Made by a program: the position numbers and the translations under genes. From Lepidodermella squamata (Eukaryota; Animalia; Gastrotricha), in assembly GCA_047495785.1 (NCBI GenBank), contig JBLDXI010000041.1, positions 101,815 to 165,814 of the forward strand: a DNA stretch of 64,000 nt, given 5' to 3'. The notes beneath the pieces are model-generated. The model was not told where the DNA came from, did no database searches, and was given only the letters and a program-made list of their open reading frames with translations. Each line of letters begins with the position of its first letter. The first letter of the stretch is position 1. Below, in pieces: positions 9,061-43,892 of the stretch.

Positions 9061-9921
9061 ATGGGTGCTGGATATATGTGCTGTCGGGTTATATTTTTCT
9101 TTTTCAACGTGTTATTCTTCGTAAGTTGATGACCGTTTTCGCTTCAATAACATTAAAACAATTTATTTACCTAACAGTTGAGCGGCCTCGGTTTGATTGG
9201 TATCTGCCTATGGGTCAGATTTGATCCACGTTTCGCTAATTACGTCGTTTTTATCAATGATGATTCAACGAATTGGCTGGCATATGTTTTCAAGGGCGCA
9301 TTGTTTGGATTGATGGGCGTTGGAGGATTTGTTGGGCTGAGTGGATTTCTCGGCTGTTGCGGTGCTATCCGAGAGTCTCGTTGGATGGTTGGGCTATACA
9401 TGGCTCTGCTGATCATGGTTATGGTTGTTGAATTGGGAGGTGGAATTTTGGCAGTTATATATCGTCAAAAGATAGAAACAGCCATGGATGGGGCCCTTCT
9501 GACTCAAATACGTAATTCTTACGGTTCTGTCGAGTCAGTTACAAAATCGATTGACGCGCTGCAGATTAATACAAACTGCTGCGGTAGCCGATCGTTTGAA
9601 GATTACCAAAGCAGTATGTTCACGAGCAAGGATCCCCAGGTAAAAGTGCCAGAGTCATGCTGCAATATCAGCCGAAACCAAAATGAACGCGATTCTCAAC
9701 TAGCCGCATGTCAAAGCGAAGCTAGCAGCAAGTACGCTTCGCACTACCTCCGATCCAGTGGATGCTTGACGCGAATCCTGGAAGCAGGGCGTCATATGAG
9801 TCTCATACTGCTCGTCATCGGATTTGGCGTGGTCGTTTTTGAAATTTTCGCCTTGTCGACTGCCGTTTGCATTTTACACGCTGCTGGCAAGTTCTCTGGT
9901 TTGAACGACGATGATTACTAG
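9061..9921 (+). CDS. Tetraspanin
   Basis: Exon 1 9061-9120, intron 9121-9177 (GTAAGT..AG), exon 2 9178-9921. Four TM segments, GFLGCCGAIRES, and a large loop with CCG and PESCC. Confidence 0.95.
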
Positions 9922-10274
9922 GAATTATTCTGTGCTAAAAAATCTCGCGCTTCCAAACAATCACATTTATGATGTCATGACTGCCATCTATGACGTTGTG
10001 TTGTTATTATTCGTGCTCAGTCAAGAATTGATCTGACATTATTGCTTTGTTGCTTCTTTGCTCAACGTATTACCATTTTTGCAGTATTTGATCAAACAAA
10101 TCGGTTACATTTTTTTTCCATTCGTCGTGGAATCCGACCCATTCTTTTTCTTATTCTTCTTCCGCTCATGTAAAGTAGCCTGATTGTTTTTAATGTTTCT
10201 TTTATAAACGATGTTTGACAGCTGTTTTTGTTATCCTTAGGTTCATTTATATTAACTCCACTGAGGCCGCTGTC

Positions 10275-11813
10275 ATGGCGAATGAGTCGCCTTCGCTGAA
10301 CGAGGAGCAAACTAGCGCCGTAGCTCATTTACAAGAAATTGTTGGTTGCTCAACAGAGGAGGCTGTCACGCACTTGGTAACAGCAAATTGGAATCTCGAA
10401 ACAGCTGTGAACAATTTTTTCAACCCGAATGCGGTGCCGGCGCAGCCGTCCGCTGCCCCGCCACCTCCACCACTTGTAAACGAGGTCATGGACCTGCCCG
10501 ACGAGGCCACAGTTCGCCAAAGAAACCGCACATCAAGCTCCCAGCCGTCTTTCGCCTCCGTCGCGGCTAATCAAGCCCGTCCACCTGTTCATCCTGCCGC
10601 ACAGGCCATTGCTAATCGAAACCAAGCAAATGGAATTTGGGCCTATTTGTCCCCCGTTACCGAACTGGCCATGCTCCCTTTCCGATACGCATTCTCTCTA
10701 ATCGGAACCCTTGTTCGTATCCTAGCCTCGTTTTGGTCCCGGCCAGCTCTTCCGCTGGCGCCGAACCGGGTGGTAGACGCTACTGGAGACGTCGAGAGTT
10801 TCATAACTGAAATGCAGGAGCGCTACGGCGCCGATCTACCTCGCTTCTACCATGGGGCTTATTCTGCGGCGTTGCGCGAAGCCCAGCGTGATCTAGTCTT
10901 CCTGATGGTGTATATCCATGCTGACGATAACCCAAACGCGGACGCTTTCTGTCGACGCGTTTTGACGGATGCCCGCTTGAAAGATTTCATCACGTCCAAC
11001 AATATAATTTTGTGGGGATGCAATAACGGTCGCGCTGAAGGCCAGCGTGTTGCACATACAGTTCGAGCCATCCATTTTCCAGTACTCGCCTTGATAGCGC
11101 TTAAAAACAGCTCAATGACGATTGTTTTGCGTATCAGCGGTAATCGAATGGCCGATGCCCCCGATGAAGTTGTCGCTTCCCTAACACGTGCTGTTGCTGT
11201 CGAGAGTGCTCACTTGAACCAGGAGAGAGAAAGACGGCGAGCGCAACAGGCTCAACAGGAACTACTTCGAGAACAGGATAGGCTGTATGCCGAAATGGTC
11301 CGCGAGGACACGGAACGGCAGCGGGCGAGAGCACAACGAGAGGCTGAGGAAGCGGCGGCAGCTCGCGCGGCTGCCGAGGCGCGTCAGTCGAAAGAGAACA
11401 GGCGTCAGGTACTTTTTGATCAGGTCAAGTCCAGAGCAGCAGCTCTGCCAGCCGAACCCAGTGGAGACGAGGCGGTACAATTGGTTGTCCGGTTGCCATC
11501 TGGCGGCTTGCAGCTCCGTCGGAAATTTTTGCTTTCAGATCCAGTCTCCTCGCTGTACGACTGGGTTCACTCAGGCTTCTGGACAGAAGATGCCTCGAAC
11601 GTCTTACAGCTTGTTATCTCATACCCGAAACGCGAACTTCCCTTGCCAACTCTCTACGGCTCTGTTCTGTCCGACCAGTCCACTGCTGTGTTCGAAACTA
11701 CCATCGATGGTTCGGTGTACACTGCCGACGCATCGCTTAAAGAAATGGGAATCAGCCGGCCGCAAGCGCTGTTAGCTGTGGTTATTGAAGATGAGGAAGC
11801 GGCCGCTGAGTGA
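10275..11813 (+). CDS. FAF2: FAS-associated factor 2 (UBA - hairpin - UAS - coiled coil - UBX), intronless CDS
   Basis: N-terminal UBA-like segment (HLVTANWNLETAVNNFF), hydrophobic hairpin, UAS (PRFYHGAYSAALREAQRDLVFLMVYIH), LLREQD coiled coil, C-terminal UBX (VRLPSG..RRKF, ISYPKR). First true ATG at 10275. Confidence 0.9.
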   Translation: MANESPSLNEEQTSAVAHLQEIVGCSTEEAVTHLVTANWNLETAVNNFFNPNAVPAQPSAAPPPPPLVNEVMDLPDEATVRQRNRTSSSQPSFASVAANQARPPVHPAAQAIANRNQANGIWAYLSPVTELAMLPFRYAFSLIGTLVRILASFWSRPALPLAPNRVVDATGDVESFITEMQERYGADLPRFYHGAYSAALREAQRDLVFLMVYIHADDNPNADAFCRRVLTDARLKDFITSNNIILWGCNNGRAEGQRVAHTVRAIHFPVLALIALKNSSMTIVLRISGNRMADAPDEVVASLTRAVAVESAHLNQERERRRAQQAQQELLREQDRLYAEMVREDTERQRARAQREAEEAAAARAAAEARQSKENRRQVLFDQVKSRAAALPAEPSGDEAVQLVVRLPSGGLQLRRKFLLSDPVSSLYDWVHSGFWTEDASNVLQLVISYPKRELPLPTLYGSVLSDQSTAVFETTIDGSVYTADASLKEMGISRPQALLAVVIEDEEAAAE

Positions 11814-13815: not shown

Positions 13816-14853
13816 TCAACCCGACACTTTTGGCTTCTTAGATGACGGTTCTACTGAATTATTACTCCCGGCATTGTTGATCTCATCAGTTTCGTGTGAA
13901 ATTATTTTCATAAATAGAGGGTTATCAGTACGAACACTGTAGACCAGAGTCGCTTTTTGATAATATGCAGGCATAAGCCTGATATTACTGATCACGTTGG
14001 CGAGAAAATGAGCGCGTTCCGCTGACCACAAACCTCCCAAACCAGTCTCTTCGCCAGCAAAAGATCCAACAACGAAATGCACATGCAAATGCCAATAAGA
14101 CGGTAGATAGTGGAAAAAGATTCGAAGACGATTAACAGGAATACCATACTTTTCTTCGATGAACTTTGGAACAGTGGAAATTAGATTCTCGAGCAAAGGA
14201 AGGTGCTCAGTTCCAAGCGATCGAAGGCTCGGGAGATCTCTGCGGCGAACAATCGCAACTAGATACAGTCTTTTTTGGGGATCACTAGAGCCATCCCATT
14301 TCATATCTGGGAGCAGTACGAAACCATTCAATGGATCGTCGTCGGACAGCACAATCCTTTCTTTTTCAGCCATGCCATCCAATATGTTGTGTACCCATTT
14401 CACAGCTAGATGATTTTCAGCTATGTAAGGCTTAGTTATTGATGTAAAGATTTCCGGTGATTCCGTTATAATAGCCGTTTCACTCTGCGAGTATTTCGCA
14501 ATGTGTTTAGCGGTAGCAGGCGATATCACTGTAGCCTTAAGCTTGTTCAAATTCGATGACGGACCAGGTAAGACATTGAAAGTATAATAGATGTCATTGG
14601 CCAGGATAAGAGACGCAGAATCCTTGGGCTCTTTTGAATTAGAAATCAGATCTACAACATCAGATTCGGATATGGGTGGCTTTTCGATAACTAAGATTAC
14701 ATCCTTCTCATCGGCTGTTGAAGTTTGACAGAGAAGCGCGAGTTGGCGACCGCTAACAGATGATCCAAGGATTTTTTTGAACGACAAATTGGAATCAGCG
14801 AAAGCTTTCCATCCTTCAGGAGACTTATCAACACCATTCCCCGAAGATGACAT
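13816..14853 (-). CDS. DCPS: m7GpppX diphosphatase (scavenger decapping enzyme), intronless
   Basis: NDIYY, TVISPATAKHIAKY, WVHNILDG.AEKERI, GFVLLPDMKWDG, LRIFFHYLPSYWHLHVHF (HIT motif), ERAH. First ATG at 14853. Confidence 0.95.
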   Translation of the reverse strand: MSSSGNGVDKSPEGWKAFADSNLSFKKILGSSVSGRQLALLCQTSTADEKDVILVIEKPPISESDVVDLISNSKEPKDSASLILANDIYYTFNVLPGPSSNLNKLKATVISPATAKHIAKYSQSETAIITESPEIFTSITKPYIAENHLAVKWVHNILDGMAEKERIVLSDDDPLNGFVLLPDMKWDGSSDPQKRLYLVAIVRRRDLPSLRSLGTEHLPLLENLISTVPKFIEEKYGIPVNRLRIFFHYLPSYWHLHVHFVVGSFAGEETGLGGLWSAERAHFLANVISNIRLMPAYYQKATLVYSVRTDNPLFMKIISHETDEINNAGSNNSVEPSSKKPKVSG

Positions 14854-16951
14854 AATGTGCAAGGTAAAACAACACTCAAGTGGCTACGTAGTTTAAGCAA
14901 AGCTAAGTGAGGCAGGTAAAAGGTGATGTTGGCCTAACCCCTGTGTAGTGCAGCGCAGTTTTGAAACTGAACGAACACGTAGGAAGGTAGCGCGTAGGCT
15001 GACTCAAAAAGGCAGGTGTGCGAAATATATAACATATATTTATTATTGCTCTTAATATTTAATATTTTCAATCTTTGTGCTTGAATGTAACCCAGAGCTG
15101 GTGGCGTACCTGACGTCTGACCTTGAAACTGCACATCCACCATAGTCCGCGGATGCCGACAGATATGCGGGGCGACTTTTGGTTCGATTTTCGAGCGGAT
15201 TTGTCGCGGCCGCATGAAACCACGCTCCTATAAAGTTTGCTGGCCCTAATGTTCAGAGGAACTAACTTCTCAACCGCTGTCGTTTGCATGATTTAGTGTT
15301 TAGTGCCTGTTATCAGCGTTCAGAAGGAAGGGCTATACTCTATGACGATAGCCGAAAGCTGACTTGAGACCATTCTAAGTCATTTGCGGCGCAGGCTTAG
15401 CAGACCCAATACTCTACACTTACTTTAACCCTTTCCTAAAAAGCTAATCCCATCCAAGATCATTGTGGCGCTAGCTAACCGCCAACTGACTTGTCGAGGA
15501 TGGATGGTGGTAATCTTGGGCTGAAGGTTGACGAAAGCGCAAGTGATGATTTCACCGGTGCGTTCGGACTTTCTAAGAGCGGACTTGCTTCGACGACCTT
15601 ATCTGCCCTTGTTGGCCGTCAGCTCAACAACCCTACTATCGATCTGAACATGGAATCTGTTGGCTGCTGACTGGTACCTCTCGGCCCTGGGTTTATAAAA
15701 GATTCCAGAGATGCGATAACCATCATTTCATTGTTAATATTGCTATGCACGATGAAGCAATATTTCATCGTGTTTAAGTGGCCTTGCTGATATAAATGTA
15801 ATTTACTAGGCTCTGTAAATGTAATTTACTCCGAACAAGCTTTATTCCCCTCCGCTGTCCTCTTCGCCTCTGTTGGGCCAGCAGTTCCAAACTTTGTTAG
15901 GATTCTTTAGCGACAATTTGAGAATCTTTGAAATGACTTCCCCTTCATAGGGACATCCGCCTTTAGAGCTTACAAGGAATACAAATGCGTCTGCTGTTGA
16001 CGATTGAACCGTGTATTTCATCCACTGGCGGTAGTTTATTGACAGGAATACGTTGTTAACTTTTAATGTGGCTTTAAATTGATACACCAATGTGGCTGTC
16101 TTGGAGCCGAGATATCGCCTGCAGCTAACCCATAATCCGCTGTATACCTGTCGAGCGTCCTTTGTTGGTTTTCCGAAAATATCACCCGCCGTGATTACCG
16201 TATACGGCTTAATTTTCGTGGTTTTTATTAGTCGCAACATTTCTCACTCGAGCAAATTTAGTGTTAAGCTTGATATGAAACAGAGATTTCCATTCTCTCG
16301 GCTCATCCTTTTAACTATTCACTTTGGAAAAATGATTGCCGATATCGCTGTGGTCATCAAATTTTGACCTCATTTTGACTGTTTCTCACCATTTCGCACA
16401 ATTGAAACACTATATGAAACCATTTGATTTGCCTTTTTACTCTTGATCATGCTTTAACTCTTGAAACAAAATTTCTTCTGATATCATACGACTGTAAGAT
16501 GGCGAACCTCTTCTTGCTAATTACTAAAGCAATGATTAAAATGACTTTAAATTATTTTTCATTGGAAAAGTGGCGTTTGAATTTTCGTGATTCGCGAAAA
16601 AACAACGAAAAATAAGCCGTATCCAACCCTAGATATTATCCCGATAGATCATAAGATAACTTCGGAAGCGTTTCCCGTCTTGCTTAAAATAACGTGCAGC
16701 CAAGCAACATTTATTACTGAAATCTGATCAACCACTGCATTTGAGAATCAGATTACCTATTGCTTGCTCAGCTTTCATACACATTATATTGCCGCGAGCA
16801 GAACTGGCTAGCCGTCTTTGATCTCATTGCTTAACCCGAGACTGAAAAGAAGGCAAAATTATACAAATTCATGTTTCTTCATTAGCCATCTAAACTTGGT
16901 GCTTGAAATTCCATTTATTGTTAATGTCAATTAGGTTTTTAAGCCAACGAT

Positions 16952-18807: not shown

Positions 18808-20536
18808 CTATTCTGCGAAAGCTTGGCCGGACGAAACACCGCCGACTGTCGCTGAACGTTGCTGCTGATTAGTGCGAGGACCTCGGTTGTTGAAGTGACG
18901 CCTATTGTCGCCAAATTGCTGCCCGGAATTTTGACCACCGGATCGGTGGAAACCACCACGGCCACTATTGCCACCGCGACCACCTCCTGAACCGCGAGGG
19001 CGCCTCGCTTCTTGTCCACCCATCCACGCCCCATCTATATAGCAAAGAGGTGAGAAAATTAAACGGAACACGCTAGATTCAAACCTCGGTTGGCACCGGA
19101 ACCAGCATCTGCGGACTTCCATTCACTGAAATCAGCGTCGTCTTGAGCAGGCCACGCAGCAGCTTCATTGTTCTCGTCGGCGCCACCCGAATGAGCAAAT
19201 TGTCGCCGATTATTACGCTGCGGCTGGTGTTGACCAGAATGCTGGCGGTTGTTTCGTTCACTGCGATTACGGCCGCCACCTTGCTGATCCGGATATGCAT
19301 GACCATCGTTGTTAGTAGGGTTGCCACCTCGATTGCTCCATGCAGCAGGATTGGCACGATCGTTGAAATTAGCTTCACCCTCTTGCTCCGGCTAAGTAAA
19401 CATATAGGATAATATTAAACATTTTCTAGGTTATTTAATTTCAGGATGCTCACTCTTCCAGGAGAACGCTGAGGAACCCAATTACCTATCTGCTGATCTG
19501 CATTTGAATTAATGAACTCTCGAGGAGCTCCAGCGCGATGCTGGTTGGCGCCGGAGGAAATTTGCGACTCTTGCAAGAAGCTAAAGCTGCCAGGTTTCAC
19601 GATTTCCTCCAATTTCGAAGCCGGAGGGGCAACTTCCTTTTGATGAGCATGTAACGCATGCTGTTCGCCATGATGCTTTTGAGGTGAGGTAGGGGGCTGA
19701 CGAACGACGTGCTCCGATGCAGATCCTTCATTCAAATGCTTCGAATGATGGTTGTTGTTATGATGTTGGGACGTACGGTTGTTGCTTTCGGCAGGCTCTT
19801 CTGTTTGAGGTTGCTCGACTTCTTGAGACTTCGGTTCTTCAGGCTTGCTGTGAGATACAGTTTGCTTCGCCTCGGAAAAGATTTGATGCAACCGCGACAA
19901 CACGCCGGCAAGGCTGGCATAGGTTTGCTTCTCGAAAAAAGGCTTCTCCTCCTTGCGCAGAACGCGTTCAAAGCAGTCAGTTGCAGCCGTTAAGAAGGCC
20001 TCGGATTTGTTTGTAGTAGGCTCGACAGTTTCGTAAAATTTGTCAATCATAGACAATTCCGCATCGCTAACCTTGTTACTCTGCTTCAGTTCATTGCGGA
20101 CATTTTCATCCCCGAGCGTGTTAAGAACCAACCGTATTTCCAGGATCTCCCGCATCCTTTCAACGTCACGCTTTCTTTGAGCGATTTTTTCCGCTTTGGC
20201 CTGTTTCTTTTGCATCGATTCATATTCAGTAAAAGTTGACTCGAACTGCTTTTTCAAGTCTCCAAGCAACTCCAATAGTTGCACAACTTCTCCAAAATGA
20301 CTCAAAGCCTCGCGCTGATCCGCTTTCAAGTTGCTATCACCAATTTTCTTGTATTCATCCAGCTTCTTTTTCCTCTTCTCCAGATTTCTCCACTTGTGTT
20401 GAACGATAGCCAAAATCTGTTGAGGCAAAGCAGCATTTTCATTGTTTTCCGTTACTGAGTTCCTTCCGGAACCAGATCCACTTTGAACAAGAGCGGGTTG
20501 AGAATCATTAGCGACGTTGGCAGTTTTAGCAGGCAT
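18808..20536 (-). CDS. CAPRIN1: Caprin family RNA-granule protein, 3 coding exons
   Basis: Exons 20536-19454, 19391-19085, 19034-18808. HR1 region QILAIVQHKWRNLEKRKKKLDEY...LKADQREA; G3BP-binding-like motif GSFSFLQES; C-terminal RGG boxes. Confidence 0.88.
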
Positions 20537-20854
20537 GATCAATGAGCAACTACTCAGCAACAATCTTAAAATCCTATAAAAAATAGCCAACCTCATAGTT
20601 AGTCACAAGTAAAAAATCAAGTTTATTGCAGTTGCAATTGAAGAAATGGATGATAGCTGAATAGATATCAGACAGAAAATTCCGACTCAGAAACTCAACC
20701 ATGAAACATTACAAAATAACATAGGTTAACAAATAGATAGAAAACAGTTTTATTGCATTTCACATTTTTGGAAAGCCACAATTTATGGCTTCTGACCAAT
20801 ACGTTCAGAGATCAGAAACCATTAAATAGCCTTATTCGTGTTTAGGAATCTCAT

Positions 20855-22412
20855 ATTATCATCATCATCATCATTTTATTGTTTTCCTTCTGATTGCACC
20901 ATTTTTTTTTTAATTTTATAAAAGAATATCAGTATTTAGGAATGGATTTATAAATGGGCAAAAAGAGGATCGAGCGCAGAAGTAAGGCGACCGTACACAG
21001 CATATAAGAATGTTTATATAGGATGATGCGCGCAAGGCACGCATACATTAGATAAGGTGATTAAAATAATAATTAGTTTTATTAACTAAGGCCAGATTTG
21101 TAAGGACAGGCCATTCTTCCAATATAAATTTTTTGCACGAGTTAACAAAAAGATTTATCGAAGTAATGTTAGTGATAGAGGCAGGTAGAAGGTTCCATAA
21201 TTTGGCAGTTCTAATAGCAAAGCTAAAGCCCCTAAGGCAAAGTGAATGTTGAGGAATTGTTAATTTGTTATTAGAATGATGTCGAGTAGTAGAGAGATTA
21301 GGTTTGAGAAAGAAAGTATCGAATTCTAGAGGATGAGACATATTATTAATTATTTTGAACGCCATCGTAAGATCGCGGATTAACCATCTTTGGTTTAAGG
21401 ATAGCAATTCAAACTTAGCCAGCCTCTGAATATAGTCGAGGGGAGCCATAGGGGGAGATATAAATCTAGATGTGAAGTTTTTTAAGCACTTTTCTAAAAG
21501 ATTACGATGCTTGATTAAATAAGGCTGCCAGACGCATGAGGCATATAGTAGGTTGGGTAAGACATAAGAATTGAAAGCACGAATTAGAACTGAGTGATTT
21601 CTGGTGGAAAAAGAGTTCAGGATCAAACCACAAAGGCGACGGCTTTTAGCGTATAGTTGGTTGCAGTGAGACGAGAAGGTCAACCTGCTATCTATGATGA
21701 CGCCAAGATCGCTAGTTTCTGTCAACGAGTTGATAATGTGAGAACCGAGTAGATAGTTATGGAGTAAGTTCTTGGATCCAAGACGAAGAATGAAACATTT
21801 TTTAAGATTAACTGATAGTTGGTGGGAAGTGAAAAAAGAATAGATAGAGTTAATATCCTGCTGTATATCAGCTGGATTTGTACCCAATTTGGGGTAAATC
21901 TTAACATCGTCAGCAAATAATCGAATAATGCAAGATTTCACACAGGATGGCAAGTCATTAATGAAAAGAAGGAATAAGATTGGGCCCAGCACGCTTCCTT
22001 GGGGCACACCGGAAGTGACTGGAGACCACTGACAATGAGCATTGTTAATAACGACGCGTTGAGAACGACCAAGTAAAAAATTAGATATCCAGTCAAGTAG
22101 GCGACCAGAAATGTTGTAGTGTTCTAGTTTATTTATTAGTTTTATGTGAGAGACGGAATCGAAGGCCTTTTTAAGGTCAAAGTAAATGCAGTCAACGGGG
22201 ATGCCCCTGTCAAGTCTAGACGACCACTCGTTGATATTTTCGAGTAGCTGCATTTCGGCACTGCGGCGTGATAGGAACCCAAACTGTTCGGGAGATAGAA
22301 TATTATTTTTAGTGAGATGAGATACCAGTTCAATCCGAATACAAGACTCCATAACTTTACATGGTATACTGGTTAGGCTAATGGGCCGATAGTTTTTAAT
22401 GGGCCGATAGTT
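20855..22412 (-). mobile_element. 5'-truncated CR1-clade LINE with an intact RT domain
   Basis: ORF 21048-22442: NYRPISLTSIPCKVME, QFGF, YFDLKKAFDSVSH, SGVPQGSVLGPILFLLFINDLP, LFADD, DLGVIIDSRLTF, LWNLLP. The 3' UTR ends AATAAA followed by an (ATG)n tail at 20855-20880. Confidence 0.93.
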
Positions 22413-25400
22413 CATTAAGGTGGCTTCGGCCAAATGATACATTTATTTCGGCATCCTGGTCGGAAGCATAAGGAATTACTAACTTACAACACCCACAATT
22501 CACGATCAAGGCCGACTTTCAGAGAACATAACGCATAACGCTGTCGTGGCAGTGAGAATTGTTCGGAAGATTTTTACGCGCCGCATAAGACACGAGCTCG
22601 GCATCCTTTGATAATTTCACAGAAAAACATAAAAATACTCTCAAATTTACAAAACAAGGCTCAATTACGGTTAAGCAATATTTTTGTTTTACCAATTCAA
22701 ATTTTTGGCGCGTAGCCTTAAGTAGTAGCAGAGAGTTCTTGGCTTGGCTCTGCGATATTTATTTTCTGCGCTTGCGATTTTCTGAAAAACCGGAGTTCCT
22801 CGTTCCTCTGTGACCTACTTCTAATATACACCCATAGAAAGCAGAATAATATGAAGCCTTTGCTTAGAACAGGTGAAATGCGCAAACTTACCTCGGCGTG
22901 CCTGTCGGCGCCAATTGGATGGAAGACCGCTCAAGTGGCGAATCCGATATGAGACATGCAATCGTCATCATTGCTGATAGTCAAACCATCATCGAAAACA
23001 ATGTTCAACGATTTAGTCACCTCATGTAGTTGGAGTCATGCCCTTCTAGCCTGTCTAGCGCAGGTGTTCATCGCAAAGCCAGAGAAAAGTTCAGCGTTGG
23101 AGAGTTGGAGAGGATGATCGAGAATCGTGAGTCATCGACACGGATGTGCCCGCAGCTCCTTGCTCCTCTCCTGTTCACCGTCAATATCGGACAGCCGACT
23201 GCCCGATACTATCGACGACCCCAGCTGATTTTCTGACAGGCGGGCCGGTTGTACCGCACGCAGTGCAATTTAAGAGGGATGATCTGAAAAAAATAACTAA
23301 GCGAAAATTGATGCCAACCTCCGGTCGTTAATGTAAATGAGACGCCGATTTAACACAGTAAAAACTTGAGCTACTTGGAACATGGAGTGCTCGTCTTCAA
23401 TCTTCACAGATTTGAAGAGCGTGCAGAAATCGCCAAGTGTCTTACCTTCCGTCTTGTCGACAAAAAGGTTTTCCGTTTTCTGCAAAGCTACCTACAGCAG
23501 TCTTATAAACTGGCGACTCGTCTCTGAGCTCCTGCTACGTCATACTCAATGCAGCCAAAACACCAACCGAGCGCTCATGTGAACGGCCCGGGCTGCTGTA
23601 AGAATTCCAAGTGAAAATTTTGCAACGGCTCTGTGGCAAAGAACGTAGTTTAAACCGAATACCAAGTTGAACCCTGTGCGCCGCAATTCCGAACTTTGCA
23701 GTCGGATAGTCGGATACACTAAATCTGTTATCATCCGTCGCTCGAAGGTGAGGAGCCAGACCGACCCTCTCAGTCGGAATCTGTCCTTGTCGCACAGGCT
23801 TGCGGAAATTCCTTATCGAACGGGTGTCAAATAGGTCATAGCTCTAATATAAGTATTATATATTTTTCGTTCTGTTGTGAAATGTCCCAATAAGCTTTAT
23901 ATCTTGCGCCTTTTGAAGTTGACTTTGAGTGGCAGGTTCTAATATCTACCATCCTTTGATGATCTTGTGGAAACAGCGCCATAGATCGCAAGTTGCACGA
24001 GTTATCCAAAAGCACTCGCCTAATTCAAAATTCCAGCGGAACGAATTCGAGAAATAAGTTTTTTATAACCGTAATTTGTTTTTCTGATTTAACATTTTGT
24101 AAACGATGCTAGTAAATCGATAGTTAACATCACCACTGTGATAATCCTGGTTCTTATTATCAAACTGATGCGTAACTCAGGAATCGAGTGAGGCCAAACG
24201 CAGGTGTAAAGCGCGCGCACAAAATAGAGCGAGATGGAGCGATTTCAGCAAAATCGGTTTTTTTTTCGTTTTGCGCTTTTAATTTGCGGAATTTATATGC
24301 ACGAGTAATGTTTCTCAGCCAAGATTTTCAAAATTCTATCGAATGGTGTCAAATTAAGCGAATTTCGCGAAAATGAACGAAATTGAAAGATGGCTAAAAT
24401 TTATCGATAGATTTCACCATCGAAGCTAACTGTGAGCATCTGATTTCAAAAATCAAACCCGCAAGAATTTATTCAATAAGATTAATTTAAGGACTCATTC
24501 GCTTCCGCTGTGTAAACACGGGAGGCGATTGCGCAATGTTCGCTCCAGTTCGCTTCCGCTCCCAGCTCTGGTGTAATCGCGCCTATTGTCGAATAATATT
24601 TCGTTAAGTTCACGCAGTAAATACCGAGTAAAAACACTTACAAGCTATTTATGATATAAAAAACCCCAATAAAAACCCTGCAGCGAATGCTATTATGGGA
24701 TTATGTGAATTCGAAAGGCCGATAATGGGCTATTGCTACTACTCGGTCCTGACGGCGATTTTGAGAGACTTTGACCAATACAGCTAAGTCTTTGGTGTCA
24801 GTCATTGTCGTTGGAGCTCGTTTGTTTCGATTATGGGAATTGAATGTTGGTTTGTGTATTTCAACGCTTCATGTCCATATCCTAACGTGTTAGATACCGC
24901 CGAAATGTTCCATTCTTATCTGCTATTCTTATCATGCCTGATTCTCATTACGCATAATTTATGATAGCAAGCTTTTTTACACACAGTGAAAGCAAGAGTT
25001 ATCACCTGCTAGAATCCCTATAAACATTATCATCATTTTGTACCTTTATATTATTTGCTAAGGCTAGGCGGATTCCCTGCCTTCGTGAATGAACAGTGCT
25101 GAGTATCGCAGTTGATGCGCGAGACAATGATCTGATGTTTATGTCTCATCTAAGTAAACGTCACGGCTGTTCGGTGAGTCTTCATTACATTGAGGCGCGA
25201 AGGGTCAACAGCAGGATGGCTATTCGAGCCATGGTGCTGCCGATGAATTCTTGGGTGAAAGGCTCTGAATATAGTCCCTTGCTCACCCGGCGTGTTTACG
25301 CCGGTACCTGTTTGGTGCCTGTCCGTCTCTCGGCGCATATTTACTTGTTTCGGATCGCTGCCGATTCTGTTATCATTGCATGCCTTTTCGTAATCGTATC

Positions 25401-25897: not shown

Positions 25898-28800
25898 ATG
25901 GAATCAACTTCTCGAGGCGGCAAAAAAGCCGGCGAGCCTCGGCCGTCCCGGACGCTGCTCCTTCTCGACGCGGTGCAGTCAGCGCTCGACGAGCGCATTC
26001 GCCTGATAGCTTCGAAGAAGCCGTCTCCGCCCCTAATTGCCTCGTCATTAACCGCGACGTCGAGCAACAGCGATAGCGTTCACGAGTCGTGGCTAGCCTG
26101 TCTCCAGACCCAGGTCGAGGCAGTGTCTCAGTTGCGTCAGCGCTACAACTGGGTGCTATCGCAGCGCCAGAGCGCGTCGAACCGCGAGAACCAGCTGTTA
26201 TTCGGCAACACGGACCCGACACAACTGACAACCGGGTCGTCGGCTGGTGAGCGGCGGCGTACAATGGCATCGACATTGCAGGCGATTCGCGCCGACATGA
26301 CACGGCTGGACGCCGAGCTTTACAGCACTGAGCTCGACCTTGAATCGACAATTCTCGGCTTCCTCGAATGCGGCATTCACGGCCTGGCGGGGTTCGCGCG
26401 TCTGTCACCCGGGTCACTCTTTCGCCTGACACTGAAACACGCAGATCAGAAATGGGACAGCCGCATTGTCACTGGTAAACAGAACAAGCAGTACCTGGAA
26501 AATGACACGCATCGGTTCCGAATAGTGCTCGACTACTCACTAGGCATTAAAGCCGAGGAAGAACGATCGTTCGGGGGCGGCAGCGGGGCTAGTTCGCTGT
26601 CCGGCTCGGGGTCTTCCCTCGGATCGGGTGATTCCTTCTTTCGGTCTCTAGTACCTCGCGCCCTTCTTCCGAAGCGCCTCATTGGAACTGTCAATTTCGA
26701 CGTTTTACCCTTGATAAGCGCGCTCCCGCAACTGCTGACCATCAGCCTCAACACTTCTGGGTCGATCAAGTTACACGTCATTGTCAAATGGCTGCCGCCG
26801 CCTGCCACAGGCGCTACGAAGGCGGATCTGTTGGCGCTAGAGTTGCGGACATCTCTTGTGTTGGATCACCACCGGCCTGGAACCAGCGACTCCAGCGGTG
26901 GCAGCAGTGGGGCGGCAACTATCGGCGCGAGATCCGGTCGGCGCATGACTGGGTTGTCGCCAAAAGGCGTTAAAGGCTCTCGAACAATTCGTCAGCACAA
27001 GACGATGAGTTTGAATCCAAATGATGTTGGTGCTCTGTTGCAACAGCTAGCAGCCGAGGAAGTGACGGGCCAAGACGGTGACGCACCATCTGATCCGTCA
27101 ATTGTCTCGTCAGTTTCACCTATTCCGTCCTTGGCAGGTTCGACGTCGGTTGCGGGCAACGATCGGCTGTCTTCGTGGTCTTGGCTAAAGAACGCAGCGC
27201 ACAGCCCGCGATCTGACGATGAGCAGCTCGATGGCGCTTTGCCGCGATCCAACCCGCCCCCCGGCGCCGGTATGGACCGTATCCGTGCTCTGGCTCTGCA
27301 TGACCTCAACTCCTCGACCGAGTACCACCCGGTCGCCGATGGCAAACCGTCTTTACCCACTATCGTCGAGCCTGAGGCCGTCGCAAACGTTTTCGCTAAA
27401 GACGGCGTTGTCGTTGATAGATTTCGAAAAGAAGACATGGTTACGAGCTCAAGACTGGTTGAATCGATCGTTGCGCTTCTTGGCGAACTTCGCGGCCGCA
27501 TCTCGGACTGCAGCGAATTCGAGCAAGCATTTTCGTCGCTGCGAAACCTCCTACCACCTCATTCAACCCTTCACATTCCAGTTATGGTATGATTTACGAG
27601 AGAACTTATTGTTGTAACAATTACCGTATTACCTGAAATATGCAGAAGGCTCATGATAATTAGCAGCCTTGTAAAAAAAAACGGGTTCTAGGTTCTAGCT
27701 AATCGAACATGAATGACAGCCCACTTGGAATTTATCCGAAATTGCATAACTTTTTCATTGGTTTAAACTTCTCTCAAGTTTCTCACAGCTCTCCTGAACA
27801 TTGTAATCAACTTCATTCAGATTTAGTCGAGTTAGCGTAATTGGATAGCATATATACATAGACAGAGGTCAGGCGCAATGACTAGGGACTAGGAAATAGC
27901 CAGAGGGATAGAGCGGTTTATAGGTTTATAGTTTACAGGAAATTAATCAAGCAAACAAGAAATGTTGTCACCCGCCCCCATAAGTCGTTACAGTTATAAC
28001 TGGTACACTAGGTTATTTAGGCTAAGATTCCTTTTTACTTCTATTCCTAGCTAATAATTGAAAATTGCTTTCTGTTTTCTAGGGTAAAAGCAAGAGCTTA
28101 GCAATGCCTGGACCTCCGCTTCGATCTAGTTCAATCCGCCAGTCTATGCGAAAGCGGAGAAATGCGATGGATCTGCAGGTGAATGTAGAGCCGACCCAGC
28201 GACAGGAAAACGTACCAATAGGAGCGAATTCAGAGCAGACAGGCACCAAAAGTGACTCATCGGAGCCGAGTGGTCTCAGTTCTACAGGCTGGCCAGAACT
28301 CGACGCGGCGATATCCTCGCATTTGCGGCGTGCAGCCGAAGACCTGCGCCGCTTAGCCTCAGTTTCATTCCTCCCATTTGAATTCGGAAACTGCGCCAAA
28401 CAAAGTGTTCTCGAGTCGCTAAAAATGCATTCTTTGGCTATTCGTCAAGTCATAATTCCGCTTATTTCAACAGCCCCGCTGGACAGGCCACTGCTGGCAA
28501 CTGACATGGCAAACTCGTTGTTGAAATCAGCGGATTCGAACTCGTTATGGTCAGCTCTCGCGCGCTCCCCATCTGGCCTGGTCGCATTGCCAGCCGCTGT
28601 TTTACACACTGAATTGACGAAACGCGTTTCATCGTTCCGATCGCGCGGCCCTACAGCAACGTATGGCCCAACACCTAGCGGAGTTTCTGACAGAATCCTG
28701 TCAAAAATTACTGACTACTACGGCGAATACGTTCTTGGAACGACCATGTCTAGTGTCAACAAGATTTCCGCTGCATCCAACGTAGTGACACTGTGTGATT

Positions 28801-30025: not shown

Positions 30026-32649
30026 TTATTCGACTCGATCTTCTGAGTCGTTGGTCTCTCGCGTTCTATCGCTGCTGTTATGGTGAGCAATTGCATTGTT
30101 GTGATTTACCGCAGTTTGATCGTGTTGGAGATTGTCGTGGATATCGTCTTTTGCTGTAGAATTTTCCTTCTTATCATGCACCGAAATTTCTTTTCGCACC
30201 TTGTCATCCTTCGAGTGAATTTCACTGGATTCTCTTGCGTGGTGCTCAAACGCTTGTTTCCGGCCAGCAGTTTCAACTTGAGAGTGATGCTCCGTGCCAT
30301 CCTGGCTGTGAACAGTTTCTTCACGCTTAGCCAGCTTATTTTGTTGTTCAGGGCGTTTTGAAACAGGCTCGGCAGCCCTGGTCGGCTGATGCTGCGGCGC
30401 TGGAGGAACTGATGGAAGGGGTTGCTTCGTCGGCGCAGGTTGTTGAACCTTAGATAGATCGGAACCTTCTTTTCTAGCTTTGCCATCAGGAGTATGTTTC
30501 AGATCGGAATCGCTCAGCTTTTTCTCGCTCTGGTGATCTTGACGTGGCGAATCCATTGTTTGCTTGGCAACCAAGTCCTCATTCTGAAAGTAAATAAAAT
30601 GATTGCGCTCATTCCTACAGCATGACTTCAAAAACTTTCAAAGGCTACGACGTAAATAAAGCGATCGGAAAAATTGTTAGGTATTATAATGGACAATGAT
30701 GGAAGCGTGCCAGGGCAGCAGTGACATTTATGGAATAGAAAAATTCAGCAGCGCTCCGTCTTACATTTAGAAATCATAGAAACGACGTTTAGCGGTATTA
30801 AATTGGAATAGCAACAGTGACTTGCAGTAGCACAGCCAACATTTAGGTCATGACGAACAAATGAAAACGGAAATTGCAAACCGGATACAAATAGTGAATT
30901 TGCCTCATTGCTGCTGGTCCTGGTACAGCATTCATTACAGCATTGAAAAATGATTCAGTTATGCCTAAACTATTCATCCCTCGTTGAAACCGTGAACGTG
31001 GGAACAACATTTGGGAAGGCTAATAATTCACAAATTAATGTTTACCTTTCTAGGATTATTTGCACGAGTCTTATCGTAGTCTTTATTTTCGGGCCTCTTT
31101 GATTTGTCTTCAGAGTTCGTATGCTGCCGATTGATTGGCGGAAGAGGCTCTTTTTCATGAAGTGACATCACACTACCAAGGTTGGATCCTCGGTTGCCGC
31201 CATAGTTTTGGTTAGAAAGTCTGCTGCCAGACGGTCCATTGCCACCATCGATAGGTCTGCGATAGGGCATTGGACGATGTACCCTAAGCCGAAGTCGTTA
31301 GCGATTAATTACAGTCACAAATTAATCATCATTTCTTACTCAGCAGCAATAGAGTTCATTCCACTGCTGGAATTTTCGAGCGATCCATTAGTAGGACTTA
31401 ACGCGACACTATTTATAAAGGCTTAAAACAAAGCTTCAAAATACTATTTTCGCTCACTGTTTCCCGGGATGCCATACAGGTAATAAGTGCTTGCCATAGG
31501 CGGCAGGTTTGAACTGTTTTTCCCTGCCGACTGCAACATAAGAGCCTCCGTTCTAATAATACGAAATATATATAATTTCAATATCGCAAATAAACAGTAG
31601 TCTACCTGTAGTTCTTCAACAGCGCGTAATCGTTCCCCATTAAGTGTATATATTCTTAATACAGCACCGGTCAACGTTTGAACTTTTTTGCCGATAGCGT
31701 TCAGCGTTGCTGGCATGGTACTCCTTTCCCCGGCAACGAGACGCACTTTCACTGCCGGCGAAATCTCATCGCCATTTACATAGATGCTAAAACGGCAAAC
31801 GAAAATTACAGAGCGCATATTCATTATTCACTGTAGAAGTGTGAATACGATCACGTAATGTGCCGTGACACACTCTAAGGCAGTCATCGGTAAACAATAA
31901 TACGGGTGCCATGGCACCTAGATCCAGTTAAAACATCGCGCACTTACTTTAAAAAGAAGCAATCCCCATGATCCTTCTTCACTTTACCGGAAGCTATGAT
32001 TCGACTGTGTTTAACGGGTTTGATCTAAGAAAAATAACAAATGATAAATTAAATTAAATAAAAGATACCCACATGATACTTACTAATACTGGTTTCGGAG
32101 CGCCGTAAGGTTCGGCGGAGTGTTTTATTTTACCAGGAACAGTAAAGTCAGCCATACTTCGTGCTTTTTCGTAGCTGGAATATAACAATGTATTTGAAAA
32201 GCTGCAAGAATGAGCTGAGTAAATGCCTACGGTAGGTGGATGAATCGCCCATGGCCACCTGCAACGTATGATTTTCCACCCTCGATCTCGTCTAGACTGT
32301 TGACCACTCTGCCATGAGTGGGAGTTCGTAGGTTACGAACAGCTCCAAAACTGGGTTCCAAAAGCTGAAAACAAGAGATGCGTGAAAAAACGAAGGAGTT
32401 ATTAAATGCTACCTTGGTGAGCTCGTTGAATAGATAATCCAAGGATCTAACTGTCTTTCTGTTGACAACATATCGCTTGTAATTCTGTAAATAAAAAAGA
32501 CTATATTGAAATTCAGGAAATTATTTTCTAATTACTTTGAAACGGTCTCCATTTTTGTAAATGTAAATCAAACGGCCAGGCTCCTCTGCAGGACCGGTTG
32601 GCCCAGAACCTGGTGCGCCTCCAGGGCCGACATTCGCTTCATCGATCAT
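30026..32649 (-). CDS. DCDC2: Doublecortin domain-containing protein 2-like (two DCX domains plus charged tail), multi-exon
   Basis: DCX1: IYKNGDRF..RYVVNRKTVRSLDYLFNELT..PSFGAVRNLRTPTHG..GKSYVAGG. Linker IKPVKHSRI. DCX2: IYVNGD..TGAVLRIYTLNG..NGGSYVAVG. Last exon ends at 30026. Confidence 0.88.
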
Positions 32650-34219: not shown

Positions 34220-35721
34220 TCATCAGCCAAACAATTCTTGGGTTCGCGGTAAACCTCTTCGCGTTAAGCTGCAATCTGGAGCCGCAATTTTAAAGATAGT
34301 GAATGATATATCACGAGGTTTTTGAAAGGGATAAATTTTGTAAGCCTGTACGCACAAAGATTTCGATGCAAATGACTTATAAAAATGACTTATACAAATA
34401 CGCCGCTGATGATATGGATGGCATGTAGAAAACTAGCATGACGAGGGTCCACAGATAGGTCTCAAATCAGTCAATCACTTGTTTCGGCGCTTCAGAGTCA
34501 TGGGTTCACCTAGGTTTACAGCTACCGTTCAAAAGGCTTGCCGAAAAGGACTCAATACAGCAATACAGCACCTCAGTATAATGCTTATACATTATTTGTT
34601 GTCGCGACTTGCCGAAAATAGAAACGAATGGCACAATGCATTTGATGCGCAGAAAAAATGGTGTTCAGCTTGTTTCTAGTGATCAGGCACGCCACTGACT
34701 TGGCGAATTTGCAAAAAGTTAGTTGTACGCCATCTATTTCCGGAACACCGCCACGATATTGTCACCCCACTGGCCTGCCATTTTTACATTTCTTCAAACG
34801 AGCCTGACGTTAATTTGAGGCTCTCATTCATTCGAGCTGACATTTTTTCGGGCAGTCAGATACTCTTATTCATCGTGAGGCGTTTCGTCATCAAGGTCGA
34901 TTTAAAAGCCGGATCAACTGGATATCCGCATTTGCTTCATTTGCGATGATGAATAAATTGTCTTAATACTCTTATTAGATTTTAGTTAGATAAGGACCCA
35001 TCGATTTCTTGTTCACGAGCATGTGAATATGGATGAAATGAAACAAACTCATGGACAAATAGGGTTTTCAAGAAAACAATTCCATCAAACTGTATTTTGA
35101 ATGGTTTATTGCTGTCCACATTCATCGGCAAGAATCATAAAAAGTAATAAAGCGCCTTTCCGTTTTCCAGCTTAACAACTGATGGGACAACCCATTACCA
35201 CCATCAAGTACAATAAAAATTTGAAGACTGGCCGTTTCCGAGATTTTTTTTCATTCTTTCGGCATTTCGTTCTCAATACAATAAATGTGGCCGCCGTGTT
35301 TTTGATTTTATGATTGCGCAAGTTACAAGCTAGTTTTCACATTTCATAGCAACAATGGCAGAAGTCAATAATAAAACAGTACCGGACTGTCGAGTTTACA
35401 GATCAGAAGAAATAATATGGTAATAATATTGACGCAAATAATGGTGATTATTAACAACGGCGAGGGTGAGAAATGTACAGGTTGAGCTTCAAGTATAATA
35501 GGGTACAATGCATCGATAGAAAAACATAAACTTAAACAAAAACGAAAATAGAAACAACAACAATGATTGGGTCTTTTGTTACAGATTGTCCATACGTAAT
35601 TTCTACATCAACCACAACAAGGGAAGAAAATTTACAAAAAAAGACAGATAATAAATTTTCAAAGCGTAGGTGCGAGGGATGCGATAACAGTGGTGCACAA
35701 GTTCCACAGAGAAGCGACAAA

Positions 35722-36981
35722 TCATCGCCGATTGTTCGGTAGATACGGCGGTGGCGGTGGTGCTGTGACTTGCCATGTCGATTGAACCGGAATTTGAGGG
35801 TACAGCCGTTGACTGTTAGCTGGATTCGCAGATAGCGCCATGACCTCCTCGAGTTTCGCCGACAGCGTCGTGACGTCCCGTTCTTCGACCATCGGTGCCG
35901 ATGCGTAGTTGTAGGGTGGAGGCGCGGGTGGCCCAACGCTGGGCTCCTCGTCGAACGCCTCAACTGTGTCGTCGTCTTCGTACTCGCTGTCCGAGTCGGC
36001 GGCCGGGCGCTGCATGACCGGCTCGGAACAACGCCGTTTCACGCGGCTCTTGCTGCGATGTCGCCGACCGCCGCAATGGCACGTGCATTTCTTGTGACCA
36101 GCGCTGGTCTTAGCGAGCTTCGCCCGCGCAGCTGCTACGAGAGCTCGGCTGGCTTCGGCCCCTTCGTAACGCACATCCGACAGTTGCGGGCATTGACTGA
36201 CGGAAACTTCGGCATCAGGTAACAAGGTGGCGATCCGCCGCTGGGCTTCGAATATTATCGAGCAGTGTTCGCCGAGTTTGACATACGCATTCGCAAGATT
36301 CGATAAACTTTTCTGAAATAAGAAGATTTACAATCAATAAAATGCTAAAGCGTAAGATGGCGATATTCTAAAAATTAAAGAAATTTTTTCCTCTAAAAAT
36401 CTTAAAAAATTCCATGAGAAAAAGTCGTATGACCTTGTTGAATGTTGTATGGAATAAACAAGAATGCAACCAACCTTGAGATGGAGCAGCTTCTGAACCT
36501 CGTTTTCGCGAAGTGTTGCTTGTACGGCAGCGTCTTGCTCGTTCGATTGGTAGACAGGGGCTCGAGCGTTTTGAACGTTGGCGAGTAACTGACGGTGTTG
36601 CGATTTCGATTCCTTCTTCGATTTCGAGGCGACAGTCAGCGAGTGTTCTTCGATGTCGACGATGCGGGAGAGAGTTCGTTCGAAATCAGCCAGCTCGGTC
36701 TTGAAGTCGGTTTGCGACTCGAGCCACATGAAGTCCAGCTCCGAGATCTGGTGCACGACGTCGCGGATGGCTGCGTTGGGCTCGCGAGACGCCCATTTGA
36801 GCAGTTGCTGGACAGCCGTGTGCTGCGCCGATGCCAGCGAATCGACAGCCTTGCGAACGCTGCGCCCGGCCGAAATAGCCGCGGTCAGCTGCTGTGGGTC
36901 ACCCGTGGCAGTAAAGCCGGGGCCCTGTGGGTTGTCGACCGCCTGAAGACGGTGTCTGATGGCGTCGACAAACTTGTCCAT
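35722..36981 (-). CDS. Pil1/Lsp1 (eisosome)-like BAR-domain protein with Pro-rich PPxY tail, 2 exons, about 365 aa
   Basis: Exon 1 36981-36475, phase-0 intron, exon 2 36312-35722 (TTTCAG acceptor, in frame). The helical region AVQQLLKWA..IRDVVHQISEL..FERTLSRIVDIE..LLPD parallels the Pil1/Lsp1 core as recalled. The gene model is solid; the family call needs an HMM or structure search. Confidence 0.65.
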
Positions 36982-39584
36982 AGCAGCAGCACAAAAAATA
37001 TAAAGAGGTAGAAACTAATCTAAACCCCCTAGAAAAACAAACAAATACTGCGTTAGAAACGGTGGCGTGTCGGGTGTGAGCTAAGTGGATTGGAGGGTCA
37101 CTCAACGGATTAATGCCCAGTGACCAGACGCCGGCGACAAGTGACCGTGACTCAGTCGCGCGCGGCCGCCACCACGCACGGGCGCGAGATAAGCCGCCAA
37201 AGGAAGCAACAGCTGGCGGCTCGCGCAGCTGACAACACTTCACAGAAACAGCGTTGGCGAAATGGTGTCGCTGTCGAGCACGCGATAATTGCCCGTCTTA
37301 TCGCTTATTCCGATTCAACTCGCCACCGTAAAACCGGCGGCATAAAAAAAATCGGGCCATCAGATAAATTGATGACAATCCTGCGGCTTCTAACGGCTTC
37401 TATACGCGACAGTAAAAATGATAGGAAATAGCATGAGGCCAAGATGTGAATGCAGAGCAGAAGTGTTGAAGAGGGAAGAAACTCGCAGCTGGTTTGCGTA
37501 GAAAATAAAGCAGTATTTCTGGCCGTATTATATTGCCGTATTACGAGCGTGTTAAGGTCGAGCGACTCTAGGCCGAAATCGTGTGCTCATGAGCCATTCT
37601 GTCTAATGCGCGCATCCGGTGTTCGAGGGTGAACTGCGGCTGACCCATCACCGGTTGCGTAACCTGTTAATATAATGCGCGGCACCACTCGCATTAATAT
37701 TTATTATACGCGCGCGAAAAGGCGCCGGGCAGATGATGAGCCGACAACATGCAACCCGCATCATCTCGCCTGCGCCCGCGGCACCACGAAAAACAGCTAA
37801 CATCGGAAAGCGCTCTATTAACCGAGTGCGATGCTGCCCTATATGTGACAGGCGGCGGATGTCGCTGTAACGAGCCTGTCACCGGCTGTAATGATGCGAT
37901 GATGCGCCGAACCAGCAGGGTGTCACGCACTCGATGGGTCCAAAGAACCCGAAATGACGCGTGGGCACGATCGCCAGCGATCGCCAGCCATATGGGCAAT
38001 AGAACGCGAATAGGCTGTTCGCACGATTGGGTCAAATTGGAGCGAACGAGTCGGACGGCGACGTGGAGCAGCGGGAAGATGCACACATTATTAGCACGTA
38101 ACGCGGAATGCGATCTGCAAATGCACAGATGTAGCGACACGTGCCATCAGCCACTACTATACTACTAATCGGCAACATGTAATAGAGCAATAAACACACC
38201 ACACAGCGACAACACAGCGAAGCGCGGACAAGTGTCGACGCCAAGCCGACCGGCGTGTAATTGAAATTTTGCGACGCTCACAGCACAGGTTGTAAAAACA
38301 AAGAGACAACTGCGGGCCAAAATAAACCGTCAACAACTCGTCATGCAACAACCGAAAACGTCTCTCGCAGCGCAGGAACGCGATAGTGCCAAACTGCGAA
38401 GTGTTGTGCAACTGAGACGCGTGATTAGTGTGCATCGTTTTCTTGCGCAAGTTGTGATTTATTGCCTAATTTTGTTGAGAAAGTGCTGTCGAAAACTGGT
38501 GTGCGCGCAATGCAGAAACTGCTGTAATTAGTAAGCTAACAGCTTAGCCACGACCGGGCGCCGGGATTATCGGCCATAAAACTGCGCGAGGTCAGCACGG
38601 CGAAGAATTTGAACATGTGCGTCAAATATGCGTGAGGGCAATAAGTAATAGACCCTCGAGGGTAAAAGGCTGCCGAGATCGAGTGGGGCGGTCGGCCAGG
38701 TGCACATTTGGCCAGGTAATAAAAACAGAAGGCGGCAGTAAGAGCAAGCGTAAATAACAAAAGGGGTGCTTATCAAAAGGCGAAAATTCGAACACAGATG
38801 CGCACACTAAGATCGATGTCGGCGAGGGTCATGTTTCACACAAACAGAAGGCAGGTAGCTGATGGGCCACCAAATTGCAACGTTCGATCTCGCAGACAGC
38901 TAACATATGCGCTAGTTTGCAATTGCAGAATGCGCTCAGCCAGCTGGAAATATTAGCTGGCCAAGTTGAATGATCTCTCAACGTCCTCTTGGATTGAAAA
39001 GGCGCTATTATGGGCAATACGTAAATCGTCATCATTCACTGACACAAAAAAACGATTAACTTGACAGTGTATGAATAAATAGGGAATATTCCGTTACAAA
39101 GAAAAAAATGCAATAAATCGCAGGGCACACCAAGGGCGCAAGCTCTACAAGAAAAATTGCAGCTGCAAGTGTTCAGGTAAAAACAGTATTATTTTCCTAT
39201 TATTTTGAAGTAATCATCCGCGAAATTTGCAGCCATGCAATAAATATTTCCACCACTTCGTAGGGTAAATGTCGCAGTGGCTGAATGAAAAAAACGATCA
39301 GAACTCGGAGCTATTGTTTAATTAGCGGTTGAAATCAAGAAATGAGTGTTTTAGCGCAGAAAGTGAATAGGTAATAAATAATAGAGTATCCGATTGAATA
39401 AGGCAACTCCACACCAGATTCAATTACGGATTTGTCAGAGCCTATAAACTAGGATTTAGAGCGGAGATCCCTTGTGAGAAAAATAGAATATGTATTTTGT
39501 CACTTATGAAGCAACGGGAGCTTGTTCCCTTGTTTCCGCGGCACGAAAATGCCTGCCCACGGGGCAGTAAAATAATGCCGAATT

Positions 39585-42462: not shown

Positions 42463-43892
<1,430 letters not shown>

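Follow-up and report, generated by a model that had tools for sequence, protein, structure and literature searches.

The window analysed here, 64,000 nucleotides of contig JBLDXI010000041.1 of the gastrotrich Lepidodermella squamata, carries on its minus strand a two-exon gene (coding span exactly 35722-36981, with the ATG at 36981). Most likely its product is a rapidly evolving Pil1/Lsp1 protein from an unnamed holozoan branch of that family, and the gene descends vertically from the ancestor that fungi and animals share. The holozoan family to which it belongs is homologous across the whole BAR domain, both in sequence profile and in predicted fold, to yeast Pil1/Lsp1, the core BAR proteins of the eisosome, which give membrane furrows their shape. 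According to the literature, Pil1/Lsp1 have been described within fungi, eisosomes are known in fungi and related furrows in algae. In the literature searched, no publication deals with Pil1-type proteins of animals or of the unicellular organisms related to them.

Homology to yeast Pil1 and Lsp1

The resemblance to Pil1/Lsp1, proposed in an earlier reading of the DNA letters alone (the sequence-only reading), is marginal when a single protein is considered and strong when a family profile and fold searches are used. Pfam scans were performed with exon 1 alone and with P0001, an orthologue from environmental contigs that is 67% identical to the window protein over 344 aligned residues, exon 2 being 59% identical over its whole length. 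Pil1 (PF13805) was the best Pfam match of exon 1, with 15.4 bits and an E-value of 0.014, against a gathering score of 27 bits. P0001 reached 22.8 bits, its match covering profile positions 43-260 of 265. In a first scan of 10 relatives, Pil1 ranked first for 9, and three of them scored above the gathering threshold. The relatives found above this cut-off are the Littorina protein (29.2), P0005 (30.3), P0004 (27.8), P0011 (27.4) and the Capsaspora protein (84.9). The Pfam check that the sequence-only reading had suggested has Pil1 as its best match, with exon 1 itself below the cut-off.

Among solved structures, the best match of the window protein is Lsp1, at a weak E-value of 0.11. P0001 alone gave three PDB matches at E <=1, all of them Lsp1/Pil1 (best E 1.6e-4), and its HMMER alignment with Lsp1 extends over the full domain, up to and including the Y-D-G-x-E-A-S motif at its end. 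With the profile of an alignment of 30 family members (A2), Lsp1 was matched at E 3.9e-14 and Pil1 at E 1.1e-10, with positions 23-250 of the 255 in the profile covered. The next PDB match stood at E 0.27, and there was no FAM92/CIBAR, SNX-BAR, arfaptin or F-BAR match in this search.

The predicted fold points in the same direction. AlphaFold was run on residues 30-292 of P0001 with the A2 alignment and returned a model with a pLDDT (predicted local distance difference test) of 84.5 and a pTM (predicted template modelling score) of 0.76. The first ~17 residues of this model stem from intron sequence translated by mistake in the gene call, and they fall outside the confident core. The model displays the three long helices and the C-terminal extension of a Pil1-type BAR fold. 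When it was compared with known structures by Foldseek, as the sequence-only reading had recommended, the top six matches were Lsp1/Pil1 chains (E 2.3e-7 to 3.7e-6, template modelling score (TM) 0.83 by target, root-mean-square deviation 3.2 Å), followed by SNX1/SNX5, F-BAR, I-BAR, FAM92A and arfaptin from E 2e-3. VIA-align, which is independent of Foldseek, also placed Lsp1 at the top (Z 17.1, 212 of 214 residues aligned), with SNX5 at Z 13.8 and FAM92A1 at Z 13.5, each over ~176 residues. Profile and structure searches are therefore both led by Pil1/Lsp1. The contrary outcome named in the sequence-only reading, in which one of the usual metazoan BAR families or some generic coiled coil would have come first, did not occur. 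In the ESM Atlas, the cluster nearest to the P0001 model consists of arthropod sequences labelled "uncharacterized protein" (TM 0.73). A single-sequence AlphaFold model of exon 1 (pLDDT 60) was left out of the fold search; both it and the P0001 model predict a helical N-terminal part, in line with what had been read from the letters.

Gene structure and transcription

The two-exon structure put forward in the sequence-only reading is borne out by the open reading frames (ORFs), by the GT..AG sites and by a spliced contig of a public sequencing run (X1). The product comprises 365 residues with no internal stops and contains both peptide stretches quoted in that reading, the second of which crosses the splice junction. 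The parts of the gene are as follows.

36475-36981, minus strand: coding exon 1, residues 1-169, delimited by its ORF and splice donor (GT); N-terminal amphipathic segment and first two and a half BAR helices
36313-36474, minus strand: intron of 162 nt, GT..AG, phase 0
35722-36312, minus strand: coding exon 2, residues 170-365 and the stop (35722-35724); end of the BAR domain and proline-rich tail
35233-37044, minus strand: minimum extent of the transcript, with a 5' untranslated region of at least 63 nt, the coding sequence and a 3' untranslated region of ~490 nt

One contig of run X1 (1,298 nt) has 36312 and 36475 directly adjacent, the canonical intron being skipped. The contigs of this run are confined to 35233-37044, and those of run X2 span the entire 5 kb compared, as genomic DNA would. 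Run X1 was classed as RNA by an index guess, with which its transcript-like coverage agrees. The exact exon joint and the restriction of X1 coverage to the gene thus indicate that the intron is real and that the gene is transcribed. No canonical AATAAA was found near the 3' end of the transcript contigs, and tblastn detected no paralogue of the gene within the window. Upstream of the gene, positions 37000-38500 have a GC content of 0.49-0.54 compared with ~0.40 nearby and hold no ORF with a Pfam match; this stretch may be a promoter, a CpG-rich region or an unrecognised gene.

Distribution of the family and descent of the gene

An exhaustive search returned 56 proteins at E <=0.001, among which P0001 is 71% identical and the others 25-45% identical over the matched stretch. 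By eye, all 56 show the N-terminal MDK..RRS pattern and none resembles fungal Pil1, while every match whose source was looked up is holozoan. A word-index search with the exon 1 ORF gave no match; the same type of search with A2 gave 5 proteins among the 8,000 most word-sharing candidates scored, a result that is uninformative on taxonomic range. Furthermore, a family hidden Markov model built from 130 relatives, without the window protein and P0001, scored the spliced window protein at 148.2 bits, compared with at most 7.3 bits for 200 shuffles.

Look-ups and a search with the Littorina member revealed unicellular relatives in Capsaspora owczarzaki and the choanoflagellate Salpingoeca kvevrii. 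Among animals, the family is present in sponges (Amphimedon, Ephydatia), in lophotrochozoans (many molluscs, the brachiopod Lingula and the nemertean Tubulanus) and in arthropods (ticks, a spider, horseshoe crabs, crustaceans, hemimetabolous insects and a collembolan), and the only nematodes that turned up were Meloidogyne species. Example members are Capsaspora CAOG_01508, Amphimedon XP_011406753, Littorina XP_070199014, Lingula LOC106163101 and Limulus LOC106461326. Vertebrate, cnidarian, echinoderm, holometabolous insect and Caenorhabditis sequences did not turn up in these searches, which did not test absence. The occurrence of the family from Capsaspora to sponges, molluscs and arthropods suggests that a Pil1-type BAR domain was present in the common ancestor of fungi and animals, and this holozoan range argues for ancestral retention rather than transfer from a fungus.

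A tree of 52 family sequences, which contains no fungal Pil1 sequences, recovers lophotrochozoan, chelicerate, insect and crustacean groupings and broadly follows animal phylogeny, as vertical descent predicts. Its insects belong to hemimetabolous orders only, and Meloidogyne, with a branch of extreme length (5.25), is placed among hemipteran-like sequences. The nonsynonymous divergence (dN) that separates the window gene from P0001 amounts to 0.19 for the BAR domain and to 0.39 for the tail; the synonymous divergence is saturated and dN alone was used. These values are consistent with purifying selection that would be strongest on the BAR domain.

With respect to annotation, almost all members are publicly labelled "uncharacterized", and some already carry the Pfam Pil1 label. 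A few bear misleading names, such as "arp2/3 complex-activating protein rickA" (Aplysia, Biomphalaria), "Staphylocoagulase" (thrips) and "myosin-I heavy chain-like" (ticks), which probably stem from the proline-rich tail. A further group appears to consist of merged gene models, with alcohol dehydrogenase in sea slugs and mS25 in an ostracod. The misnamed or merged-looking relatives are P0074, P0077, P0078, P0136, P0102, P0081, P0028 and P0013. P0001 (L001:8053-9209) was itself called as a 402-residue ORF, in which the first ~45 residues come from the translation of upstream sequence and intron. An improved model has its ATG at 8053, a 29-nt exon 1 and a 53-nt GT..AG intron (8082-8134) and encodes 367 residues, with a start (MVKLVEALKN) that resembles that of the window protein (MDKFVDAIRH). 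Each of the two genes is without the other's intron, and intron positions thus differ between two close relatives.

Lipid-contact residues and the proline-rich tail

The following elements were located in the product.

36937-36981, minus strand: N-terminal amphipathic basic helix, residues 1-15 (MDK...IRHR...), hydrophobic moment 0.47-0.50, helix predicted at low confidence
36106-36900, minus strand: Pil1/Lsp1-type BAR domain, residues ~28-238, split by the intron, from profile, fold searches and column counts
36148-36168, minus strand: Y-E-G-A-E-A-S motif at the domain end, residues 218-224, equivalent to Pil1 Y241-D-G-Y-E-A-S247
36019-36093, minus strand: Cys-rich polybasic segment, residues 243-267, four Cys and eleven Lys/Arg, common to P0001
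35944-35997, minus strand: acidic Ser/Asp/Glu patch, residues 275-292, common to P0001
35911-35922, minus strand: first PPxY motif (PPPY), residues 300-303
35743-35754, minus strand: second PPxY motif (PPPY), residues 356-359, near the C-terminus; P0001 has PPSY there

The PPxY motif is an established ligand of WW domains. It follows the BAR domain in 115 of the 122 full-length members, nearly always as PPPY and within ~20 residues, with the family consensus (D/E)PPPPY(S/T)P. In the window protein, both lineage inserts, the Cys-rich polybasic segment and the acidic patch, precede the first PPPY. The former is a possible lipid-modified or electrostatic membrane anchor, judging from its composition. 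A Pfam match of exon 2 to DUF2486 (18.8 bits, below the cut-off) was judged to reflect proline/alanine-rich composition.

The BAR domain holds an invariant tryptophan, W63, equivalent to Pil1 W89. Upstream of it, the N-terminal consensus of the family, MDKA.RA.RRS, aligns its first Arg with Pil1 R43 and its Ser with S45. In a cryo-electron microscopy study of the eisosome, R126, K130 and R133 were assigned to phosphatidylinositol 4,5-bisphosphate (PI(4,5)P2), and R43, K66 and R70 to a lipid fitted as phosphatidylserine, the identity of which in the native membrane was left open (PMC11324527). The positions of the phosphatidylserine set are all basic in the window protein, namely R9 (R43), R40 (K66) and K44 (R70). 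Across the family, the R43 position is R in 102 of 107 members and the K66 position K/R in 113 of 125, while the R70 position is non-basic in most members, with basic neighbouring columns. Concerning regulation, the Pkh phosphosites of Pil1 are S45, S59, S230 and T233, and the numbering of the Y241-S247 motif follows a Pil1 peptide (PMC2094096). At the equivalent sites the window protein has R11 for S45 (S in 97 family members), S206 for T233 and A203 for S230.

Origin and possible function

Several observations weigh against a vertically inherited Pil1/Lsp1-type protein. The window protein alone, scanned as exon 1, stays below the Pil1 gathering score; the structure was modelled, as a monomer, on a 67%-identical orthologue and not on the window protein; and the PI(4,5)P2 trio is replaced by E101, S105 and V108, so that the lipid preference probably differs from that of yeast. 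In the family the R126 position is R/K in 109 of 132 members, the K130 position acidic (E/D) and the R133 position Leu. In addition, the window gene and P0001 share a very long branch (2.6 changes per column), and in the unconstrained tree the protostome clade of 46 rows excludes them. The approximately unbiased (AU) test accepts a tree holding both with bilaterians (p 0.585), and we read their odd position as probable long-branch behaviour of a fast-evolving lineage. The long branch, together with the fact that Pil1 has been described chiefly in fungi, might also suggest a recent horizontal acquisition from a fungus, which the sequence-only reading had offered beside ancestral retention. We consider such a transfer extremely improbable, since the exhaustive search yielded only family-like and no fungal-Pil1-like proteins, fungal Lsp1 is reached at the weak E-value given above, the MDK start and the PPPY after the domain are shared with the family and absent from yeast Pil1, the bilaterian position is accepted, and the gene contains a spliceosomal intron and lies among animal genes; the retention half of that proposal is the one that the holozoan relatives support. 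It is likewise very improbable that the resemblance to Pil1 arose by chance in a generic coiled coil or in a protein of one of the usual metazoan BAR families (FAM92/CIBAR, SNX-BAR, arfaptin, F-BAR). A language-model feature search with exon 1 did yield FAM92, BAR and arfaptin clusters, at generic, lead-level scores with low recognition; UniProt automatically names some relatives "F-BAR domain-containing protein", and all BAR domains reach Z 10-14 against the P0001 model. However, the window pieces had no Pfam match to FAM92, BAR, arfaptin, Vps5 or FCH at E up to 10, the A2 profile matches only Lsp1/Pil1 among the PDB entries, the Foldseek E-values are separated by about four orders of magnitude, and the C-terminal extension with its Y-x-G-x-E-A-S motif is aligned by Lsp1 only.

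As regards function, a Pil1-type protein of this kind would dimerise into a curved BAR module and would bind acidic membrane through its N-terminal amphipathic basic helix and the conserved basic residues equivalent to Pil1 R43, K66 and R70, probably assisted in this lineage by the Cys-rich polybasic stretch. Its tail, presumably disordered, would display the two PPPY motifs and recruit WW-domain proteins to the membrane patch, the most likely partners being Nedd4-type ubiquitin ligases. Membrane binding, dimerisation, lattice formation and WW-domain binding by the window protein are all properties that we infer. Alternatively, the Pil1-type fold may have been kept while membrane scaffolding was lost, which would leave a soluble dimeric adaptor or substrate of WW-domain proteins (Nedd4-type ligases, Yorkie/YAP-type regulators) with a helical domain used for dimerisation only. 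The loss of the PI(4,5)P2 trio, needed for eisosome assembly in yeast, the PPxY as the most constant feature outside the domain and the fast evolution of the lineage would suit a soluble adaptor. We nevertheless regard it as unlikely, given that the family conserves the N-terminal amphipathic basic segment and the R43 and K66 equivalents, with K44 in addition in the window protein, that the domain is more constrained than the tail by the dN values above, and that the lineage gained a Cys-rich polybasic stretch of a kind that often anchors proteins to membranes.

Implications

As far as we found, the holozoan family is implicit in databases, through the Pfam Pil1 labels on some members, and undescribed. 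If it is truly missing from the usual model animals, this would explain why it has gone unstudied. A scaffold regarded as "fungal" can now be traced, on homology only, to the shared ancestor of fungi and animals, which raises, without settling it, the question of stable eisosome-like membrane domains in the wall-less cells of animals. Moreover, the near-universal PPPY offers a concrete, testable link to WW-domain ligases, and the swap of lipid-contact residues provides a natural experiment on the lipid choice of the scaffold.

A bolder idea, which we hold to be rather doubtful, is that many invertebrates and unicellular relatives of animals possess an eisosome-like cortical membrane microdomain. 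A Pil1-type lattice would there lie on a phosphatidylserine-rich rather than PI(4,5)P2-rich membrane, and the PPPY motifs would dock Nedd4-type ligases, as an animal counterpart of the yeast MCC (membrane compartment of Can1)/eisosome and Rsp5. If this were true, the microdomain would control the removal of surface transporters or receptors, and its loss in vertebrates, flies and C. elegans would explain why it has been overlooked.

Genomic surroundings

The animal neighbours mentioned in the sequence-only reading are real: a doublecortin-domain ORF (DCDC2-like) and a MEF2-type MADS-box exon were both found. The genes and gene pieces recognised in the window are the following.

31447-31824, minus strand: doublecortin (DCX) ORF, 25.1 bits, part of a multi-exon gene adjoining the Pil1-like gene
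near 42520-42575, plus strand: MEF2-type MADS-box gene, first coding exon with an intron after it; the fragment is matched by Pfam SRF-TF
1146-1652, minus strand: sodium:dicarboxylate symporter piece, long single ORF
9178-9921, plus strand: tetraspanin piece, long single ORF
10215-11813, plus strand: FAF1/UBX piece, long single ORF
13816-14862, minus strand: DcpS piece, long single ORF
25898-27592, plus strand: FAM65/PL48 piece, long single ORF
19415-20596: caprin-like gene, adjoining a reverse-transcriptase ORF
21048-22442, minus strand: reverse-transcriptase ORF of 464 residues (E 8e-32), directly beside the caprin-like gene

The long single-ORF gene pieces suggest a compact genome whose introns are few and short, and the reverse-transcriptase ORF is probably a retroelement insertion.

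Comparison with known systems

Among known proteins, yeast Pil1 and Lsp1 (PF13805; PDB 3plt, 8qb7, 8qb8) come closest. The window protein shares with them homology over the whole BAR domain, the predicted fold including the C-terminal extension, the invariant Trp, the Y-D/E-G-x-E-A-S motif, basic residues at R43, K66 and R70 and an N-terminal basic amphipathic segment. It differs in its identity of ~20%, in the replaced PI(4,5)P2 trio and in the change of S45 to R11. Unlike the acidic tail of the yeast proteins, its tail has two PPPY motifs and a Cys-rich polybasic stretch. The host also differs from yeast in having no cell wall.

FAM92/CIBAR, SNX-BAR and arfaptin are alike in the three-helix BAR fold (VIA-align Z 12.6-13.8 over ~176-181 residues), but they give no sequence-profile match, their Foldseek E-values are ~10,000 times weaker than that of Lsp1 and they do not cover the C-terminal extension. 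The angiomotin family combines a BAR-like, lipid-binding coiled-coil domain (ACCH) with L/PPxY motifs that bind the WW-domain proteins YAP and the NEDD4 family; its motifs lie N-terminal to the domain, unlike those of the window protein. The analysis brought up no relationship to it in sequence or fold, and the likeness is an analogy of design only.

Finally, the window protein shares with the unnamed holozoan Pil1-like family the MDK start, the conserved basic residues, the invariant Trp and a PPxY after the domain. It is only ~25-33% identical to the mainstream members, which share 50-60% among themselves, and it departs from them in seven extra residues after the N-terminal helix, in RHR in place of RRS, in the loss of the R126 equivalent and in a PPPY shifted by ~40 residues by the Cys/basic and acidic inserts.

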